From: Selaginella moellendorffii
Taxonomy: Eukaryota > Plantae > Lycopodiophyta
Assembly: GCF_000143415.4 (NCBI RefSeq)
Contig: NW_003314293.1
Location: 1,260,431 to 1,324,430, forward strand
Length of the DNA: 64,000 nt
Direction: 5' to 3'
Position 1 is the first letter of the stretch; each line of letters starts with the position of its first letter. Below are positions 12,981-62,336 of the stretch, piece by piece. Below the pieces are notes generated by a model. The model saw only the letters and a program-made list of their open reading frames with translations. It did not search any database and was not told where the DNA came from. Both the position numbers and the translations under genes were made by a program.

Positions 12981-13930
12981 AGTGAGAATAATAGGACCTC
13001 TTGTTATAAAAACGAGCTTGGAAAGTAAACATTGGATAAACTGGTGCCGAGTGAACCCTTTGATGATACTCCCGAAAGAAAGATGGATGGGTCACTGTAT
13101 TTGCATAAGATGCTTCTATTACTTATGCAACTCTTCATTTCCCGGATACATCTCGGTGTTTAAACCTTCCACTGCATCAACACCAACAGAATGTTGTTGA
13201 CGCCAAGGTCTCCACACAAGAAATGGAGGCCGCCAATCCAGAAGATGCCAACAATGCTGATAAGTGTGACTAATTTCATCACAAGCCCAACAATGAATAT
13301 CACGGCTATGAGCACGTCCTCACCTTTGTCTTTGAACTCAAGCAACAATAGCATCAACCTCCATTAGAACAATACCATCTCCCCCATCTCTCACAAGAAG
13401 TGGAGCTGAAAGATATGCAACAAAAAGTGGAAAAGGCCATATCTCATAATATTGTGCCAAGTGACGAGCATCATCAAGGGTGGATCAGGTAAGTGCATGC
13501 ATATATCCTACCAAATCTTAATGAAATGCTGGCCATAACATTCCAAACTTGATCTGCTTCGACATATTTGGCTTTGTACAAAGTAAAAGGCTTCGAAAAC
13601 AAATGCAAAATTGCATCACTAACTCAGATGGCCCTTGATGACGACAATGCAATTGTTGTAAGGCATCATCACAATTGTCAGCATATCCAAATCCTTATTT
13701 GAAAATGTTTGGGAGAATACTCCAATCCCCACGAGTGGTTGTGTTTAAACCATTATAGCATTGCAGTGCTGTCCCTTGGAGACACGTGGGAAACTCATGC
13801 AAATGTTAAACATCATCCCAAGAATGATATATGGTAATCACCATGAAGTGATTAAACCAATGATACACATCATCCTTAGGATTCCCAAGAAAAAACTTTG
13901 GCCGAATACAAAGATTGGCACCATTGTTCA
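12981..13930 (-). mobile_element. Decayed gypsy gag/protease fragment (family B copy 1)
   Basis: Collinear with 20125-21060 and with the reverse complement of ~14990-15920. Confidence 0.75.
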
Positions 13931-14540: not shown

Positions 14541-17500
14541 TGTGAGGTTCATGATGCCATATCTAATATTAGTATAATAAGATTTTGGTAGCCATTAGAT
14601 TAGTTTCAATTTGGACCACTCACTCTTATATATAAGCTAGGGTTTTTAGGTTAATTGATATGCACATTCCTTGTATTCTCTTTCCATATTTCATGCACTC
14701 ACATTGGTGGAGGTGAAGGGTAACTTTAATTATCTATAAGGAGTTTTAAAATTTAACTTTTTCATTGTCTAAATATTTCTTTTTTCTTATTGTTTTTCTC
14801 AACTTCTTCTCTTTTGCTCTTTCCTTTTCATTCATCTTCATAGTAGAGCAGTAGCCTTTTTCTCCTTTGACTCTAGAGCAGTAATTAATGCAATTGCTCA
14901 ATGCTATACAGTTGCAATTGAAAAATCATACTCAATTGATGGCAACATTCACGATGCAGGGTACAACTCCTCCTGCTCTTGCTACCAATCCTTGCGTCTG
15001 GCCGGAGTTCTTTCATGGGAATCCTGGGGATGATCTATACCATTGGTTCAATCACTTCATGGTGATTGCCCTATATCATTCTTGGGATGATGCTCGATGT
15101 TGGGTGAGTTTCTCATGTGTCTTCAAGGGACGGCACTACAATGGTATAATGGTTTGAGCACAACCACTCGTGGGGATTGGAGTATTCTCCTAGATGTTTT
15201 CAAATGAGCATTTGGACATGCCAACAATTGTGATGATGCCTTCCAACAATTGCATTGTCTTCATCAAGGGCCATCTGAGTTAGTGATGCAATTTTGCATT
15301 TGTTTTCAAAGCCTTTTACTTTGTACAGAGCTAAATATGTCAAAGCAAATCAAGCTTGGAATGTTGTGGCCAGCATTTCATCAAGATTTGGTAGGACATG
15401 TGCATGCACTTACTCGATCCACCCTTGATGATGCCCTTCACTTAGCATAACGTTATGAGACATGGCCTCTTCCACTTCTTGTTGCATGTCCTTCAACTCT
15501 ACTTCCTATGAAAGATGGTTCTATGGAAGATGGTACTGTTCCAATGAAGGTTGATGCTATGCTGCTCAAGTTCAAGGACAAGGGCAAGGATGTGATCATG
15601 GCCGTGATATTCGCTGTTAGGTATGTGATGAAGTTGGTCACACTTATCGATGTTGTTGGCATTTTCTGGATTGGCAGCTTCCATTTCTTGTGTGGAGACT
15701 TTAGCGTTAATAATGTTCTATTAGTGTTGTTGTAGTGGAAGGTCTGAACACTAAGATGCATCTAGGAAACAAGGAGTTGCGCAAGTAATGGAGGGATCTT
15801 ATGTAAATAAGTTAGTGACCCCTTTATCTTTCTTTTGAGAGTAACATTAAAGGGTTCACTCAACACCAGTTCATCTAGTGTTTACTTTCGAAACTCATTT
15901 TTATAATAAAAGGTCTTCTATTATTTTCTTTGTGTTAGTTGATACAAGCTTGAGTTTATCTTCTATTGCTTGGCCTATTGCCACATATTGCCATCTACAT
16001 TTGTGTTAAACAGCAAAGCTAATTTTCATTATTTATGACAATAGTTGTATATATGCATGTGTATAGGATGAGGTGGACCTAGTTATGCATGTAGGCAATC
16101 TCAAGCTTGAGTTGTAGTCATTACAAATGGTGCCGAGTCAAACTTTTGACCTTATCCTTGGTATGGATTGTTTGCGGCACAATCACACCAAGTATGACTT
16201 TGAGGTTTTTCCCCCTTTGTCTCATACTTTTTGATATTTTTTCCATTCTTCTCACTTCTGTACTTCTTTATCCCTTTGCTTTTACCTCTACTTCCATCAC
16301 TTTTATCTTCCTATTACTTCCTCCTAAGATGAGGATTCCGTGCCATTGGTGGTTGCTATACTTGATGTTCAATGTCCACAAGGTGTAAAGCAAAATTTAC
16401 CTTCTCATGACGAGATTTATGTGGCTCAAAAGATTGAGCCATAAATTTGAAGGCTTTGCAATGGGTTTGAGAATCTTGTATCACTTGCCATTTTGGCATT
16501 TACATTCTCAATATCACCTTAAAGACAATCTTCTTTATTTTCTAGGGATGGATCCTAATGATCATTTACAGCTGGTGGTGCCTTCAATCTTTATTCCATG
16601 CTTTCTCTATGCCTACCATAATTCTTTTATTTTATGTGGGCATATGGGACATCATCGTATGACCGAGAAATTGCACAAGTCATTTTATTGACCGGAGATA
16701 CAACGTGATCTTATCCGGTATATGTGTAACTATGTTTTATGCTATACTCATAATATGTGTTGTGAAAGGATTGTTAAAGTCAATTACAATTTCCTGTCTG
16801 TTTGAGTTTGTGGCATTTGATTTGATGGGACCTTTTCCACGCTCAATTGTTGGCAATGAGTATGTCTAGTGTATCCTCAATTGAGATGTCAAAATGTTAA
16901 ATGCCTCAACCATAAATGTGAGACCATTATCTAAAAGAATCCGCTTTGGACAGGAATGCTGGAACACCACTCGATTGAGCAAAAAGTATCCAACAATAAT
17001 TGCAAACATGCTAGTAAGAGCACCAATTTCCACCTAGCGAATCAAGTAATCAGAGGCAATAATCACTTCAAGAGTGTTTATCATTCACAATTAGACGGTT
17101 TGGTGGAACAGCTTATTCAGACCTTCAAAAGGATGATCATGCAGTATGTACACTTTGAGCATTCGGATTAAGATGGTTATTTCCTATCTCTTCGATATAC
17201 GTATGTTACAGAGGTGTAAAGTTCTATTGATGCTTCACCATATAAGCTCCTATAAAATCATAATCAAATACTGCTAATGGAGTTAAGTTTACCTTTGCAA
17301 TTGCTACGAGCTGTTGATGCTAGGTTATAGGATCAATATTTAATGAGCATTCTTCCACTTATCAAAGTAAAGTATAGCAAACACCTAGGCCATGTACAAG
17401 TGGGATAACAATGGTGCTACAACTCCCATCATCGTCCACATGTGAAATACAAAGTGGATAACTTGGTGTTAGTCTATTTTCCCCATCTTACAATACATGA

Positions 17501-51130: not shown

Positions 51131-52616
51131 ATGGAGCCGGGGCAAGCGTGGGCTCTAGAGGTCGAGTGTCGCGCGGCCAAGGCTGGCAAGGACGCGCTCA
51201 AGCGTCTGGGATGGCTGGATTCAGGGCGCCGGAGCCAGCTGACCTGCGATGGGTCCAAGGTAGCGTTTCCAGTGACAATGCAGGGCGCCCAGGCGCTACT
51301 CTCGATTTTTGGAGGAGAGAGAGGCCAAGATCAGTGCGAGCAGCTTGTTGGTTCTCCCGGAGCAAGCCTTGTTTCGTTGGAGCTGCCGGGAAATCGAAGA
51401 AGTAGCATCGCTCCCCAGCAAAGATTGAGTAAAGAGGTGTTGCTGTTGCTCCAGGAGCGGGACCTTGACGAGGCGCTCGTGGAAGAGCTTCCAACGAAGT
51501 AAGTCATTGTTCTCGTGGTAAAGTGCTAAGTCTCAGGAGACTTTCCAGGTGGGAAAGAATCGGTGATCTCGTAATTCTTCCGGGGAGCTCACTGCGGAGC
51601 GAGCTCTGGAAATCTCTAGGATCTCCGCTGTGGAAAATCATAGCAGAGTGCCTTGGTGTAACCAAAGTAGCACGTCAAGTAAGTAGAGATTGCTTTCTCT
51701 TTGATTATTCTATAGATACAATAGATGTTTCCAGGGCCCGGTTGCCTCGACTGGAACGAGAGACAGTGGAGTGGAAATGCTGCTGGGCGAGGATGGCTGG
51801 GTTGAGCACCGAGAAAACGCTATTCTCTATTGCTTCGATGCCACCAAGTGCATGTTTTCTTCTGGAAACGTGACTGAGCGCTCGAGGATGGGAGAACTTA
51901 ACTGTGACAACGATGTGATTGTGGATCTCTTTGCCGGTATTGGCTACTTTGTGTTGCCATTCCTCGTGAGGTAGTTGATCGAGCAGCTTTTCTCTTACGC
52001 TGACAAATGTTTCTCTCCTTCCTTTTGGTTTTCACAAGGGCCAGAGCGAAGCACGTCTATGCATGCGAATGGAATCCACACGCTCTCTACGCTTTGCGCC
52101 GGAACTTGCGTGCCAGTGCTGTCGAGAAACGGTGTACCGTCATTGAAGGTGACAATCGGCTCACTGCTCCTCGGGTAAATGCGTTAAGCTTGGAGAAAAG
52201 ATTTACAAGGCTTTACTTGGCAGGAAGTTGCTGATAGAGTGTGCTTGGGACTTCTCCCCTCGAGCGAAGGAAGCTGGGCTGTGGCAGTGAGAGCTCTAAA
52301 GTAACCGTGATTTCTTTCATTTGCGTACAAGTTTCCTCACTTCTTCTTTCAGGTCAGGCGGTGGAATTCTTCACGTTCACGAAAACATCAAGGACGTCGA
52401 AGAGGAGGACTGGATTGAGTACCTCACTAAGTCCCTCCAGACACTTGCAAACGCACAGGGTTCGTGATCGCTCTTCTTTTACTTATTTGGATCACGTTGA
52501 TGATAGGAAGAAGCTGGGAGATCCGTGTGAACCACATCGAGCACGTCAAGTGGTATGCTCCACACGTACGTCACATTGTAGCAGACGTATGGTGCAGTTC
52601 ATTCAAAGAAACGTGA
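51131..52616 (+). CDS. TYW2: tRNA wybutosine-synthesizing protein 2 (Trm5/Met10+-like SAM-dependent transferase), ~7 exons
   Basis: LPT/WERIGDLVIL, HRENAILYCFDATKCMFSSGNVTER, VDLFAGIGYF, VYACEWNPHA, ADRVCLGLLPSSE, GGILHVHEN, VKWYAPHVRHIVADV. Confidence 0.9.
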
Positions 52617-53044: not shown

Positions 53045-53530
53045 GTGGAACAGTTGGAGCCGTTGACTAAGGCGAGATGGTCGTTGACCCGCGTGAAATT
53101 GGCGTTGACAGGAGCCACTGCTGAATTGGCGGATCCTCCCTCCGCTGCGTCTCAGTTTGGAGACTCCAACCTATTTCCCTCCAGCAGCGTCAATCCCAGA
53201 GGCTCCCTGCCGCCAACCAGGGACGTGCCAAAAAGGGCGGGATTGGCGATGACGGGCGCCACTGCTGGATCTTTGGCACGTCCCTGGTTGGCGGCAGGGA
53301 GCCTCTGGGATCGACGCTGCTGGAGGGAAATAGATTGGAGTCTCCAAACTGAGACGCAGCGGAGGGTTTGGACGGAGACCTCCGGGAGGTACTCGTTGAG
53401 CAGCGATTATTGGCTCGTGAGGCGAAGTGTGGAGTAAGAAGACGAGCAGCTATGGCCTGACGTATACGGATGGGCTGGCTATGGAAGACAGTGGCCACGT
53501 GGGGGTGTACATAACACGCATATGGTCCAG
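53045..53530 (+). pseudogene. Rearranged fragment of the bulb-lectin gene containing a 95-bp inverted duplication
   Basis: Homologous to the reverse complement of 54815-55240, with deletions. Confidence 0.8.
53138..53366. repeat. Long hairpin: arms 53138-53232 and 53272-53366 (95 bp, ~2 mismatches), 39-nt loop
   Basis: Arm 1 ccctccgctgcgtctcagtttgg...gacgtgccaaa is the reverse complement of arm 2 tttggcacgtc...gagacgcagcggaggg. Confidence 0.9.
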
Positions 53531-54106
53531 CTACCCTTGATTGTCTTAAACACCTTAGACTCTTCTCTGAGGAAACAGCAGAAATTGGAGGCCCTGGTGA
53601 TCGTTGACGAGGATGATGACCTTGAGTTTGAAAGCCGGTATTATTTGCGAGTTGGTTCTTAGTTGTATACTCGGCATCCAAAAAATATGCCTCGACTCAA
53701 GTTTGATGACTACTCATCACCATCACGTGTTATTACACCAAGCTGCTTGTCTTGTTTAATCACTGATTCGTGCAAAACCGTGACACAACATCACACTGGG
53801 GCATCCAGGAACATGTCTCGACCCCGAGCAAAGTCTGAAGGCTCCTTCGCTGCAGCAGTGGCGGTGATCATCGAATTCATGGTGACTATATCCCAGGTAC
53901 ATCGAAGAATTCCCTGCAAGCGATAATGCTCGCATGGTAGCGGCTCCAGTGACATTGCATGGCGACGATCGTTTTAGAGGAAGGTCAAGATCAGTCGAGC
54001 TGCCATGAACTGCCCAGCAAAGATGCTTCAGCAGTGAGGTCTTCACGTGTGGAAGAGTTTCCAATAAATGTACAGTAGGAGATTTTAAGGCTCACCAGCC
54101 AGTTTT

Positions 54107-54570
54107 AGAAATCTCTAGGATCTCCGCTGTGGAAAATGGTGTGATGAAAGTAGCACATCATGAAGTAGCTCTTTGACTGTTCTATAGATACCATCGATGT
54201 TTCCAGACCCGGTTGCCTCGACTGGAACGAGAGACATTGGAGTAGAATTGCTGCTTGGCGAGGATGGCCGGGCTGAGCGCTATTCTTTCGATGCCACTAA
54301 GTGCATGTTTTCTTCTGTAAGCGCTCGGGGATGGGAGAACTTCGTACGATATGGTTGTGGATCTAGGTATGGCTACTTTGTATTGCCTTGTCTTGCCTTT
54401 TGATATGCATGCGATGGAATCAGGTCCCACCGTGAATCCCCATGCTCGCCAGCATCGAGAGTTCTTCCTTGCAGCTCCAAGGCCATTGCTTGTGGCGTCC
54501 TTGGCTCATCCACTCATTCTTATCTTATGCGTGAACCACGTCAGCAACGTCCGTCACATTGTACCGGAGT
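54107..54570 (+). pseudogene. Partial decayed duplicate of TYW2 that retains intron sequence
   Basis: gaaatctctaggatctccgctgtggaaaat, ccggttgcctcgactggaacgagagac and tcgatgccactaagtgcatgttttcttctg match 51610-51870; deletions and frameshifts. Confidence 0.8.
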
Positions 54571-54805
54571 GCACATATCACAAGCTCATCAGTTGCATTA
54601 GCTAGTTACGAGCTCGTAACTAGCTAAAAAAAAATTTCATAGCTCGTACTCTTTCTAAGGAGAGGACTTTAGCAGTCATTCAACGGCGGGTGATCCATTG
54701 GAGAACACGTAAGAACTTACTAAATGCTATATTAGAAACTCGATTCCAAACAGATAGCTTCTCACAAACTCATCCCCAGCTCTGTATAAGCACATGCCTT
54801 ACAAT

Positions 54806-55813
54806 CTATGGACTTGACCATATGCGTGTTCCAGAGTCCGTGATGTAAACACCCGCATGGCCACTGTTTTCCATAGCCAGCCCATATGTATACTTCAGCC
54901 CATAGCTGCTCGTCTTCTTACTCCACACTTCGCCTCGCGAGCCAATAATCGCCAAAACTCCATACTCGTTGAGATGCAGGTAACATCCCGAGTCCCTCCC
55001 GGAGGTCTCCGTGCCCCACACCCTCCGGTGCGTCTCCCTCACACTCACCACCAGCGCGCAGTCAGTCTCCATGGTGAGCACGAACAGCAAGTTTGGAGAC
55101 TCCAATCTATTTCCCTCCAACAGCGTCGATCCCAGATGTTCCCTGCCGCCAACCAGGGACGTGCCAAAGATCCAGCAGTGGCGCCCGTCAACGTCAATCC
55201 CGCGCGGGTCAATGACCGTCTCGCCCGCATCAGCGGCTCCATCATCCAAGATTTTAGACTGTGGAAGATAAAGAAGTGTAAGATCAAGGGTGCCGCTGCC
55301 ACTACCGGTACCTGGCTCTTCCTCAAAAGGAGTGTCTCGCAGCTCATACTCGATTCCAAAATAGCGGAGAACCAGGTTGACGTGGCCGTACCACATGTTG
55401 ACAATTGGATCCAAGTCCTGGATCGTGTCACGGATCTCCTCCAACATCGTCGTGATGCTCTGGATGAGCTCGCGGCCCCCGGCGCTGGTGCGGCTGGGCG
55501 CCACTGTGCAGATGTCACTGTTCTCCATGAAAGCTCGGTTGTACAGCCACAGCCTCACCCGCACAAACGCATTTTGGGTGTATTCCACGACGAAGGACAT
55601 GCTCCGCCCTGTGCCGTAGCCAGCGTCAGGGTTCAGGGACCTCAGGTACTCTTCGATGCGGCTTATGAGATCCAGGACGTGGGTGATAGCAAGCTGGCCA
55701 AATCGCAGCCTGAACCTGAAGATTCCACGGAATGGAATCCCCGGAGGTGGCTGTGCAATGCAGGGACAAGCAAGTGACATGAGTAGAGCAAGTGACACAA
55801 GGCTGGTTCTCAT
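54806..55813 (-). CDS. Intronless secreted protein: signal peptide + ~190-aa unrecognised domain + C-terminal bulb-type (GNA/B-) lectin domain
   Basis: MRTSLVSLALLMSLACPCIA signal; STLLEGNRLESPN..FVLTMETDCALVV..RVWGTETSG..CYLHLNEYGVLAI...LAMENSGHAGVY...IWSSP. Confidence 0.75.
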   Translation of the reverse strand: MRTSLVSLALLMSLACPCIAQPPPGIPFRGIFRFRLRFGQLAITHVLDLISRIEEYLRSLNPDAGYGTGRSMSFVVEYTQNAFVRVRLWLYNRAFMENSDICTVAPSRTSAGGRELIQSITTMLEEIRDTIQDLDPIVNMWYGHVNLVLRYFGIEYELRDTPFEEEPGTGSGSGTLDLTLLYLPQSKILDDGAADAGETVIDPRGIDVDGRHCWIFGTSLVGGREHLGSTLLEGNRLESPNLLFVLTMETDCALVVSVRETHRRVWGTETSGRDSGCYLHLNEYGVLAIIGSRGEVWSKKTSSYGLKYTYGLAMENSGHAGVYITDSGTRIWSSP

Positions 55814-56159
55814 GATTGGCCTCAACAATTTTCCACATCAACTTAATTGAGCACAAATAATTGTTTTTATATGTTTTAATTATTTCATATCCATCTATGT
55901 ATGTGTGTTGGCTCTAGCGCATATGCTTGAACGCTCAACAACTATCCCAGGAATTTGCGCGCTTAACAAAGCCAGGAAAGCAGTGGTTTCTGGCAACATT
56001 CTGAGAATATCCCTTCACTATTTAAAGTCTATCATCCGGACTATATGTAAAGGCATGCCCATCGTTGTGAGCGCCCTTGGATCCTTACAAGGCATGTCCC
56101 TTGTCCCATGCTCTGTGCTGGAACTTGAGCGCAAGTGAAGTTCAAGGAACAGTATATTG

Positions 56160-56310
56160 TCAATTAGCTCACTGCTCCTGGGGTGAATGCATTTATTCTT
56201 GGAGAAAAGATTTACAAAGGGTTTGCATTCTTTGCAGAAAGTGCTGATAGAGTATGCCCGGGTGAAGGAAGATGGGCTATGGCAATGAGAGCTCTAAAGA
56301 AACAGCTATT
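56160..56310 (+). pseudogene. Second TYW2 fragment
   Basis: gctcactgctcct..ttggagaaaagatttacaa..gctgatagagt..gagagctctaaag matches 52158-52302. Confidence 0.7.
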
Positions 56311-56649
56311 TTCTTTTATTTGGTTTTCATAAGATCTTTATCAATGAGTTTAAATTTGTAAGGGAAACAAATTAAAGGGAAAGGGCCTAAAATGAATAAA
56401 ACTGCAATTTAGTATTAAACAATAGACTAGAGTACTATATCTGTGACCGCTCTATGGAAGAAACTAGACGCATATGAGGTACCAGGAGTCATGAAATCTT
56501 GCTCAAAGCTGGCACAAGTGACACTACAAAGCTTTGGAAGTGGTTTGTTGATGAATACAACCAACATTTGGACATGGAGGTGATGAGAATTCATTCTTAG
56601 ATCACGTATACATGACAAGGACATTCAAGCACACACATAAATGTTGAAC

Positions 56650-59049: not shown

Positions 59050-61243
59050 TAAAATAAAATAGAAATTGTGAGTGTTTAAAATATAAAAATAAGTATATTT
59101 TTTGAGGTTTAGACCCCTGCTTATATATAAGAATGGATGGATCAAATTCAATTCCAAGATAGTCTATATATTATAGTACTATAATTAATGTATTACCTAG
59201 CCAAGGTAATACATATATATACATGCACCATACTCACCTTCAAATAATGAAAAGGTAATGACAATAAGTCATAGAACTTTTACTAAGTAATTATAAATTA
59301 CTATAAAAATATAAAGCTCTTACAAAACCACTAACAAAGTTGTTGACAACCATGACCAATTGTATACAGAGTTGCAACTAATTTATTAGGATTTTGTAGT
59401 TAACTTATGCTTGTGTAATAGCTTTGGATTTTGTTTAATCAAATACTTAAACCAATGATAAAGTCATGACTTTGAACCAAAACAAAGGATTGCAAGAAAT
59501 ATAATAATCAATAAAGCACTATTACAACAAATAACACATCCCATCTCTAAATTTACCTGTCAACAATTCTCCAAGACCACCATTAACTCATGTTTATAAC
59601 TATGAATATAATTTACCTTTGGGCCTTCCCTTTGGTAAACAACTGAGACCCATGTTAATTTAGACTTACAAATATCGTCCTTGTCCAATACCACACATAG
59701 GAGGTTAGACTCACTTAATTTGTATTCTACATCCTTTTTATCCTCTTTTTGAAGGAAAAAATTGTTTTGAAGCATAGGTTTTATTTGGATTTGCTACGTT
59801 TATTCTCATTCTACTATTTATGTTTAGCTTCACTTCACTATCACATTTGTTCGGCCTCACTATGTCAAAGTCGAATGTTTTGTTCAAACTTGTTTTATTC
59901 ATCCTCACTCTACAATCTATGTTGTTCATCTTTACTCCAATATCATATTTTCTTGTCCTCACTAGAGGAAGAAACATTGTGGAAGAAGAAAAAATTCAAT
60001 AATTGTCAAATTAGAAATGGAAAGAGAAGGAAATATATTCAAAGTCTAGAAAACAAAGAATTTGCTATAATAAAATATTTTGGCTAGTATAAAATAAGTA
60101 AGAGATTACATTGTTCAACCTTCTTAACACGCAATTCAACATTTGAGATAGGAAAATCAATAAAAAAAGTCTACACTCTCAAGAGAATATATAAACTCTT
60201 TAGTAGCAATGATGAAACAGAGGTTTTTAATGGCACTCATAATTGGGGATATGTATTCAATCTGAAACTCTGGCTAAAGTGACTCAAACCCTTGGAATAG
60301 AGGAATATTTAATATTAGAATTGATCAAAAACTCCACCAAAGAAACAAAAATAAGATTCTCAGCTTAATGTATATGCTCAATATTCAGATTAGTATAAGA
60401 AGGATAGAAAACACTCAATTTAACACTAGACTAAGAATGAGAATTATAAAAGTAAAAAATGATTAAAGTGCCAAGAGAAGGAAATATCGCGAAATTTCCA
60501 ACTCCTAATCTATATTATAAGCTATCTCCATAATAATCAAGTTCCCTATTATAATCCAAAATCTATTTGAACTTGTAAATATTGTTTCCTCATAAACTCA
60601 ATCCTCAAATATTCTTTAAAAACTAGATTGTATCATCTATAGTTCGTTAATTGATGTTATAATCACACTCCATAATGACAGAAGATGACAAAACACCAAG
60701 AATAACACAAACTATATAATCACATCCCACAGAAATTAGAGATAGTATCACACCCAAGATAGGTGCAACACCAATATAATCACACCACACAACACCAAAG
60801 GTTCAATTCAACAAAGTAGCAATAACAACCTTAAATAACATACTCCTTAATCGATGATAGTGTGGCATGGTAGAAGAAGATTAGCAATAAAGATCAAAAG
60901 AAAGAGTAAATCTAAACATAACAATAGCTAGAATTCTAGAATTTGCAAAAAGTTAATATAAATCTAAATTTAAAAGAAAATAAAGAAATAAAAACAAAAA
61001 ATACAATCCTGAATATTAAAGCAAAACAGTGCCAAAAAACTTTGCCCTTCAAGGACAAATTGCAATGCTTCTCATATTTACTAATATAAGTGCTCACGAT
61101 ATAAGAATAGGTATATTAATTGGGGTTTAGACCCTTGCTTATATATAAGAATGGATATACCAGATTCAATCCGAAATAGAGAGTCCATATGCTATAGTAA
61201 TATATAGTAATATAATTAATGTATTACCTAGCCAGAGTAATAC
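59050..61243 (-). mobile_element. Decayed non-autonomous LTR-like element with direct repeats ~59105-59213 and ~61123-61243
   Basis: ggtttagaccc..gcttatatataagaatggat...taattaatgtattacctagcca..gtaatac occurs twice; weak gag/protease-like remnants between. Confidence 0.5.
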
Positions 61244-61343
61244 GTGTGTGTATATATATATATATATGTATGTATGTATGTATATATATATCTATGTGTA
61301 TATGTGTATGTATATATATGTATGTCTATATATGTGTGTGTGT
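61244..61343. repeat. Compound (TA)/(TG)/(TATG) microsatellite
   Basis: Directly visible. Confidence 0.9.
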
Positions 61344-61704
61344 CTTTACAAATATGAAATACTAAAAAGATTTACCTAATTTTTTACAGGTTAATTTTCG
61401 AAGATATAAATATAAAATTATTTTTATTCTTAATATTATTAAATTTTTAAATGCATATTTGTATAATATTTCTGTATGGATACTATATATAATGTGGTTA
61501 GAAAATACAAGAAACAAAAATACATAAACAAGATACCTCACGCCAGATGGAATTCCACAAGAACCCTAGAAATTCCCGATTTGCACTCGTGGACTCGACA
61601 CTAGAATTGCGAGATTTAAAACTGTACTGTCTACGCACTCTTCATTTTTACCTCATCATTAAACCACTTTTCTGTTCCCTAAACTCCGAGTTGTAAATGA
61701 ACCC

Positions 61705-62150
61705 ATGGGCTTACACTTGCGAAGAACCGAGAGCAGTAGCATCTGCTCGGTAGCTCCAGGGGTAGCGAGCTCATCCAGAGCGTCAGGACGATTGGAGGCG
61801 ATCCGTGAGGAGCTCGAGGGTCTACCGGGACATGCGGTTGGTTCTCCGCTTCTTCAAGGACGAGCCAGGTGCCTTGATCTTAAACTTCTCGACCTTGCAA
61901 TCTATAATCTTGAATGATCGAGTCGCTGACCCGGGTGAGATGGTCGTTCACCCGCACCAGACTAGCGCCACTGCTGGATCTTTGGCAAGGAGCTCGACGC
62001 TGCCGGAGGGACAGATTTGAGTCTCCAAACAAGGTGTCGTGCTTATCATGGAGAGTAACTGTGTGCTGGTGGTGCGTGTGAGGGAGACGCACCGGAAGGT
62101 TTGGCTGGCTATGGAAGACAGTGGCTTCGAGCATGCATATGGTCAAGCTC
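61705..62150 (+). pseudogene. Decayed paralog of the lectin-domain gene (opposite orientation)
   Basis: RLEAIREELE, LVLRFF, LQSIILNDRVADPGEMVVHP, cgccactgctggatctttggca, MESNCVLVVRVRETHRKVW, LAMEDSG; frameshifts and deletions. Confidence 0.75.
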
Positions 62151-62336
62151 ATATATCCAGTTTGGAATCGAGCTCGAGTCGGGTTGCAAATGGCCGAGAG
62201 TGCTTCGCGACAATCGACCATTTTCTCCAGGCAATGGATCGCGATCGCGAGCGTGATCCTATTAACACACCTCTCTTCTTAAATGCTACCTAGGAAAAGA
62301 GTACGACTTTGCAAGTTATCAGGGTTTTTCTTTCGC

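Follow-up and report, generated by a model that had tools for sequence, protein, structure and literature searches.

A 229-nt fold-back in the genome of the spikemoss Selaginella moellendorffii, a lycophyte, reads as a real inverted duplication of recent date, which arose within a defunct copy of the adjacent lectin-like gene that has lost its 5' part. Its two arms (53138-53232 and 53272-53366; 95 nt each) are 98% complementary, with two mismatches, and enclose a spacer of 39 nt; the intact gene, which encodes a secreted lectin-like protein, is 1.4 kb away. In the window, by which we mean the whole 64-kb stretch of DNA that was analysed, it is the sole inverted repeat of 40 nt or longer with a spacer below 1 kb. 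We lean towards interpreting it as a young by-product of rearrangement in a decaying pseudogene, with a latent capacity to give rise to hairpin siRNAs. This reading is favoured by the setting of the hairpin, a promoterless, 5'-truncated pseudogene with four deletions that lies in a patchwork of duplicated fragments. New here are the placement of the right arm within a longer inverted pseudogene, the older fragment upstream of the hairpin, the secondary nature of the left arm, the duplicated block around them, and the match of the arms to a single gene in the window. The features on which the argument draws are these:

51771-52616, + strand: 3' exons of a TRM5/TYW2-type methyltransferase gene (PF02475, E 8e-15 and 6e-7)
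53052-53137, + strand (sense): older lectin-derived piece, called U below; 53052-53125 is 78% identical to parent 55244-55171
53138-53232, + strand: left arm, the secondary inverted copy, antisense to the lectin mRNA on the + strand; both arm-specific substitutions lie here
53233-53271, + strand: spacer (loop); after 4 nt of filler (53233-53236) its sequence is lectin-sense and runs straight into the right arm
53272-53366, + strand: right arm, the segment from which the other was copied; it reads lectin-sense on the + strand, and the pseudogene continues colinearly past both of its ends
53237-53558, + strand: younger lectin pseudogene, ~320 bp, 92% identical to the parent over aligned blocks, 3' part of the gene only
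54806-55813, - strand: intact parent gene, 335 aa, an annotated S. moellendorffii protein
55090-55168, - strand: potential siRNA target site in the parent mRNA, matched by the arms and encoding part of the lectin domain
61823-62178, + strand: third lectin copy, older and broken, ~82% identical in DNA, with many deletions

Geometry and history of the fold-back

Either strand of the hairpin folds near-perfectly. As RNA, the + strand reaches -231.8 kcal/mol (z -28.5) and the - strand -233.8 kcal/mol (z -25.9); no fold as stable came out of 200 shuffles. On the - strand, both mismatches turn into G:U wobbles and the stem is paired throughout; the + strand keeps its two mismatches. These results agree with the original prediction, whose coordinates, arm length, mismatches and loop size for the inverted repeat were all reproduced. 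The folding of both strands, for which it had called, gave a near-perfect hairpin each way, and its claim that the mismatches would wobble on the minus strand is borne out. As a signal of strand-specific selection, the G:U pattern was rejected: because each one-arm transition wobbles on either strand with equal chance, both wobbles fall on one strand with a probability of 1/2. The near-perfect stem is a sign of youth, not of constraint.

Library and assembly errors can create palindromes with short spacers, and the hairpin could in principle be a false palindrome derived from a chimeric or fold-back read. We regard such an origin as very improbable. From a fold-back artefact one would expect a flawless palindrome with all sequence past the breakpoint inverted; the arms instead differ at two positions, and their context is asymmetric, comprising a unique spacer of 39 nt, the 4-nt filler and, to the left, a separate fragment of greater age.

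The arms themselves record where they came from. The inner 79 nt of the left arm share 74 identities with parent 55090-55168 (94%) and those of the right arm share 76 (96%), as expected from the ~80-nt match to the lectin gene that had been noticed in each arm. Over a longer distance, 53237-53350 aligns with parent 55203-55090 at 96%. In a correction to the first description, the right arm is no lone gene fragment but part of the ~320-bp pseudogene. Common to both arms are the junction of a 53-bp deletion (parent 55037-55089 is missing) and three substitutions relative to the parent. The derivation of the hairpin from the lectin gene, and the argument that a deletion junction shared by both arms dates the inversion after the deletion, are upheld by these matches. 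Arm sequence also recurs in the third lectin copy (~61965-62030), in one 23-nt block with 100% identity and one 39-nt block with 87%, and the weak match reported near 61970-62030 is therefore real.

The left arm is bounded by non-homologous junctions (53137/53138 and 53232/53237), whereas colinearity with the parent extends to either side of the loop and right arm; this identifies the left arm as the secondary inverted copy. At the two sites where the arms differ, the left arm is changed and the right arm carries the parental base; both differences therefore arose on the left arm. One of them, a single site, changed a CpG by transition (lectin-sense TCGA became TTGA). Read from the sequence, the pseudogene formed first, acquired the 53-bp deletion and the three substitutions, underwent the inverted duplication and finally gained the two further substitutions. 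An arm divergence of 2 in 95 implies that the inverted duplication is recent; by comparison, two annotated near-identical lectin-like proteins, which probably represent the two haplotypes, differ at 4% of their residues.

A 95-bp stretch of the pseudogene, already bearing the 53-bp deletion and the three substitutions, was copied in reverse 39 bp upstream, and the inverted copy borders the 4-nt filler at one end and the older lectin fragment at the other. The event may have been DNA repair or a replication template switch of the fold-back type, and it would be one of several rearrangements in a locally duplicated block of TRM5/TYW2-like and lectin sequence. Inverted duplications by fold-back or template switching form at DNA breaks or stalled forks. 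Like them, the hairpin has an inverted copy across a short spacer, filler at one junction and a possible 4-nt microhomology ('ccct') at the other, although these junctions are not diagnostic and piece U does not fit a single-event model. U overlaps the loop region in content, yet it is only ~75% identical to the loop copy, and by its sequence the locus contains lectin fragments of at least two ages. One template-switch event cannot explain the whole locus. A single model with two template switches (duplication, inverted copy, duplication) was likewise rejected: the sense copies of parent 55203-55155 are ~75% alike and the arms 98%.

The parent gene and its decaying surroundings

The younger pseudogene corresponds to the parent from position 55203 down to ~54780 and is inverted relative to it, the parent lying on the minus strand, another correction to the first description. 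Compared with the parent, it has suffered deletions of 53 bp (frameshifting), 3 bp and 12 bp as well as a gapped stretch of net -29 bp. Also missing are the 5' two-thirds of the gene, with the N-terminal domain and the signal peptide, and the sequence upstream of it, including the promoter. Homology to a functional parent thus coincides at 53237-53558 with disabling lesions, the combination that defines a duplicated (non-processed) pseudogene. Pfam returned no match for any ORF at the hairpin locus, and an exact look-up in the protein collection found none of the five ORFs that span the hairpin or the third lectin copy. Taken by its lesions, the host of the hairpin is a dead, decaying pseudogene. 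As an outgroup for the substitutions that separate pseudogene and parent, the third copy has lost too much sequence to serve in a test for CpG decay or relaxed constraint and leaves most sites unpolarised.

The parent protein has a probable N-terminal signal peptide, and its layout comprises an unnamed N-terminal domain and a C-terminal domain of the GNA/bulb-type lectin fold. The C-terminal 144 residues match solved bulb-type lectins, with 1dlp at E 7e-13, gastrodianin (1xd5 and 1xd6) at E 1e-7 and 2e-7, and snowdrop agglutinin (1jpc) at E 1.8e-5, placing the domain close to the GNA/bulb-type (beta-prism II) proteins. Pfam assigned no family to the parent protein at E up to 0.1, B_lectin included. 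In the aligned subdomain the mannose-binding motif QxDxNxVxY is degenerate, reading ETDCALVVS where 1dlp has QSDCNLVLF, with changes at the Q, the N and the last aromatic position. A lectin fold is likely for this domain, and binding of mannose or another sugar by the protein is doubtful.

A second entry, SELMODRAFT_420245, is 96% identical to the parent protein and probably represents the other haplotype (allele) in the assembly; parent and allele each lie on one contig. SELMODRAFT_404400 is a paralogue with 47% identity. Besides the parent, these two are the only such proteins among 5.8 billion clustered proteins, and UniRef names both of them 'Bulb-type lectin domain-containing protein'. 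About 180 nt past the stop codon of the lectin gene lies a perfect 26-nt palindrome (54600-54625; agctagttacgag/ctcgtaactagct), followed by nine A.

On the other side of the hairpin, the PF02475 exons of the TRM5/TYW2-type gene occupy 51771-52231 on the + strand. Its apparent stop, read by eye from the ORFs, falls near 52616, with the hairpin following 520 nt downstream on this strand, and the gene is apparently intact. Degraded TRM5/TYW2-like fragments (54097-54387, 54531-54568 and 56158-56322) flank the intact lectin gene. This arrangement suggests that a block of TRM5/TYW2-like and lectin sequence was duplicated, inverted and eroded, and the hairpin seems to lie inside it. Far from this block, the window holds a 419-nt inverted repeat (13384-13802 and 15100-15518) whose arms are 88% complementary and 1.3 kb apart. 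It encloses a nested pair (13811-13923 and 14980-15092) and is probably a transposon or a rearranged duplicate.

Targeting capacity and routes to transcription

siRNAs with matches to the parent mRNA could come from either arm. Perfect matches are found for 19 of the 75 right-arm 21-mers and for 9 of the 75 from the left arm; within two mismatches, the right-arm count rises to 59 of 75. No other target of an arm 21-mer lies within two mismatches anywhere in the 64-kb window, the third lectin copy included. A lectin family had been envisaged as the target; in this window only the parent gene comes within two mismatches, and the potential target would be that one gene and presumably its allele.

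To make such siRNAs, the hairpin would have to be transcribed. It appears to have no promoter of its own, and transcription would depend on read-through, for which the candidate sources are the TYW2-like gene (+ strand, 0.5 kb upstream) and the lectin gene (- strand, whose stop codon lies 1.44 kb upstream). When a minus-strand read-through RNA of 2.26 kb was modelled, the hairpin still formed locally (104 pairs), and the remaining pseudogene sequence paired with the coding region of the lectin gene through 234 pairs, the longest perfect helix being 37 bp. Once transcribed, either RNA would form a 95-bp duplex that Dicer-like cutting would convert into mixed siRNAs, many of them perfectly complementary to the parent mRNA. 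Orthologues of DCL1, DCL3 and DCL4 occur in all land plants examined, S. moellendorffii included (You et al. 2017, PMC5569507). The S. moellendorffii genome gave no DCL2, and in this species the same study saw neither an obvious 24-nt peak nor phased siRNAs (PMC5569507).

These properties raise the possibility that the hairpin is transcribed and diced in the manner of an endoIR-siRNA or young MIRNA locus and that its siRNAs lower the mRNA of the neighbouring lectin gene in trans. If the precursor were the lectin gene's own read-through transcript, the result could be negative feedback. Such a role would draw on the 95-bp near-perfect stem on both strands, on the many 21-mers that match the parent perfectly and no other target in the window, and on the dicing machinery of the species (PMC5569507). 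The parent gene also lies upstream on the strand whose hairpin is fully paired, with the hairpin preserved in the modelled read-through RNA, and loci of this kind are documented in Arabidopsis and rice (PMC3237417, PMC2708354, PMC10827316). However, there is no dedicated promoter, the matches in Rfam are generic and sub-threshold, the host pseudogene is decaying, and the G:U pattern would arise by chance half the time. In addition, perfect inverted-repeat DNA in plants tends to become methylated and to silence itself transcriptionally (PMC9263138). We therefore view silencing of the parent in trans as possible, if rather doubtful.

The same tendency would underlie a possible effect at the level of DNA or chromatin, in which the inverted repeat would attract methylation or heterochromatin, with or without 24-nt siRNAs, silence the pseudogene in cis and perhaps dampen the flanking genes. 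In hpRNA transgenes, the inverted-repeat DNA is methylated without exception (PMC9263138), and rice pseudogene small RNAs are mostly 24 nt, for which action in cis has been suggested (PMC2708354). The CpG transition in the left arm is what deamination of a methylated cytosine would give, yet one transition at a single site is not evidence, and the lack of an obvious 24-nt peak in S. moellendorffii (PMC5569507) speaks against such an effect. We consider it unlikely.

The most specific scenario would make the hairpin a proto-MIRNA at the moment of its birth in a lycophyte. Without DCL2, the hairpin on read-through lectin transcripts would be processed into 21-nt siRNAs, and these would direct cleavage of the same gene's mRNA at 55090-55168, so that a secreted, rapidly duplicating lectin-like defence gene would limit its own expression by feedback. 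We think this very unlikely.

Our preferred reading, a rearrangement by-product with latent siRNA capacity, has to accommodate several of the same observations. Near-perfect inverted repeats in plants are often sources of small RNAs, and a target-derived hairpin beside its parent is what the inverted-duplication model predicts (PMC3237417). The fully paired minus-strand form, with the parent gene upstream on that strand, and the survival of the hairpin in the modelled read-through RNA likewise count against a mere by-product. Judging from its context, the hairpin would not be maintained by selection. Our assessment tips towards a latent or incidental source of hairpin siRNAs, from which a proto-MIRNA could be built, and away from a regulator already in place.

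Kinship with known small-RNA loci

The inverted-duplication model of MIRNA birth was reportedly put forward by Allen et al. in 2004 for Arabidopsis MIR161 and MIR163. In an updated version of the model, target-derived hairpins are predicted beside the parent gene, and a miRNA gene has been described that overlaps two adjacent inverted paralogous pseudogenes whose parent is its target (PMC3237417). The spikemoss hairpin has the anatomy of such a proto-MIRNA, with adjacent inverted arms that share extended similarity with one protein-coding gene. As in young MIRNA genes born by inverted duplication, adjacent segments in opposite orientation derive from one gene, the similarity extends far beyond 21 nt, and the parent is the predicted target. 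Unlike them, the hairpin is known from DNA alone, and its host is a lycophyte. By the criteria of Axtell & Meyers 2018 (as cited in PMC10827316), a plant MIRNA precursor is a hairpin shorter than ~300 nt with few mismatches and no large internal loops, and at 229 nt with a 95-bp stem the spikemoss hairpin falls within this description. Since only 2 of the 95 stem positions are mismatched as yet, any product would be an siRNA population, not one miRNA/miRNA* pair.

Searches of both strands against Rfam gave no match to a curated miRNA family above threshold. The best scores were 37.2 bits for mir-4526 (gathering score 100) and 36.5 bits for mir-5366 (gathering score 73), and membership in these families was rejected, the matches being those of a generic hairpin. 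Elsewhere in the window, a low-complexity TA/CA-rich tract (61240-61354) drew sub-threshold Rfam matches to mir-297, mir-3149 and mir-1277, which look like chance hits to simple sequence.

Mouse oocytes are said to produce endo-siRNAs from inverted gene-pseudogene pairs. In rice, pseudogene-derived siRNAs that act on the parent genes are documented, and most pseudogene small RNAs there are 24 nt long and have been suggested to act in cis (PMC2708354). The spikemoss locus resembles both systems in that a pseudogene, inverted with respect to a nearby parent and carrying an internal inverted duplication, could give rise to dsRNA complementary to the parent mRNA; in rice and mouse the small RNAs were sequenced, whereas here the likeness lies in the arrangement of the DNA. 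Another class, the endoIR-siRNA loci, includes Arabidopsis IR71 and IR2039 (PMC10827316). The hairpin shares with them a long near-perfect fold-back that DCL enzymes would turn into a population of siRNAs. IR71 and IR2039, however, are much longer, and their transcription by Pol II has been shown, whereas the spikemoss hairpin has 95 bp per arm and no evident promoter and is known as DNA; DCL2, moreover, was not found in S. moellendorffii. The hairpin is of a kind already known, that of inverted-duplication proto-MIRNA and endoIR-siRNA loci, and at the level of sequence it has every property that such a locus requires.

If the hairpin is silent, it is an ordinary scar of rearrangement and mainly marks how quickly the lectin-like family of the spikemoss duplicates and decays. 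If it makes siRNAs against its parent, it would represent a dated and anatomically clear first step on the inverted-duplication route to new plant microRNAs. Such a case would come from a lineage whose small-RNA pathways are unlike those of flowering plants, with no DCL2, 24-nt peak or phased siRNAs reported (PMC5569507).
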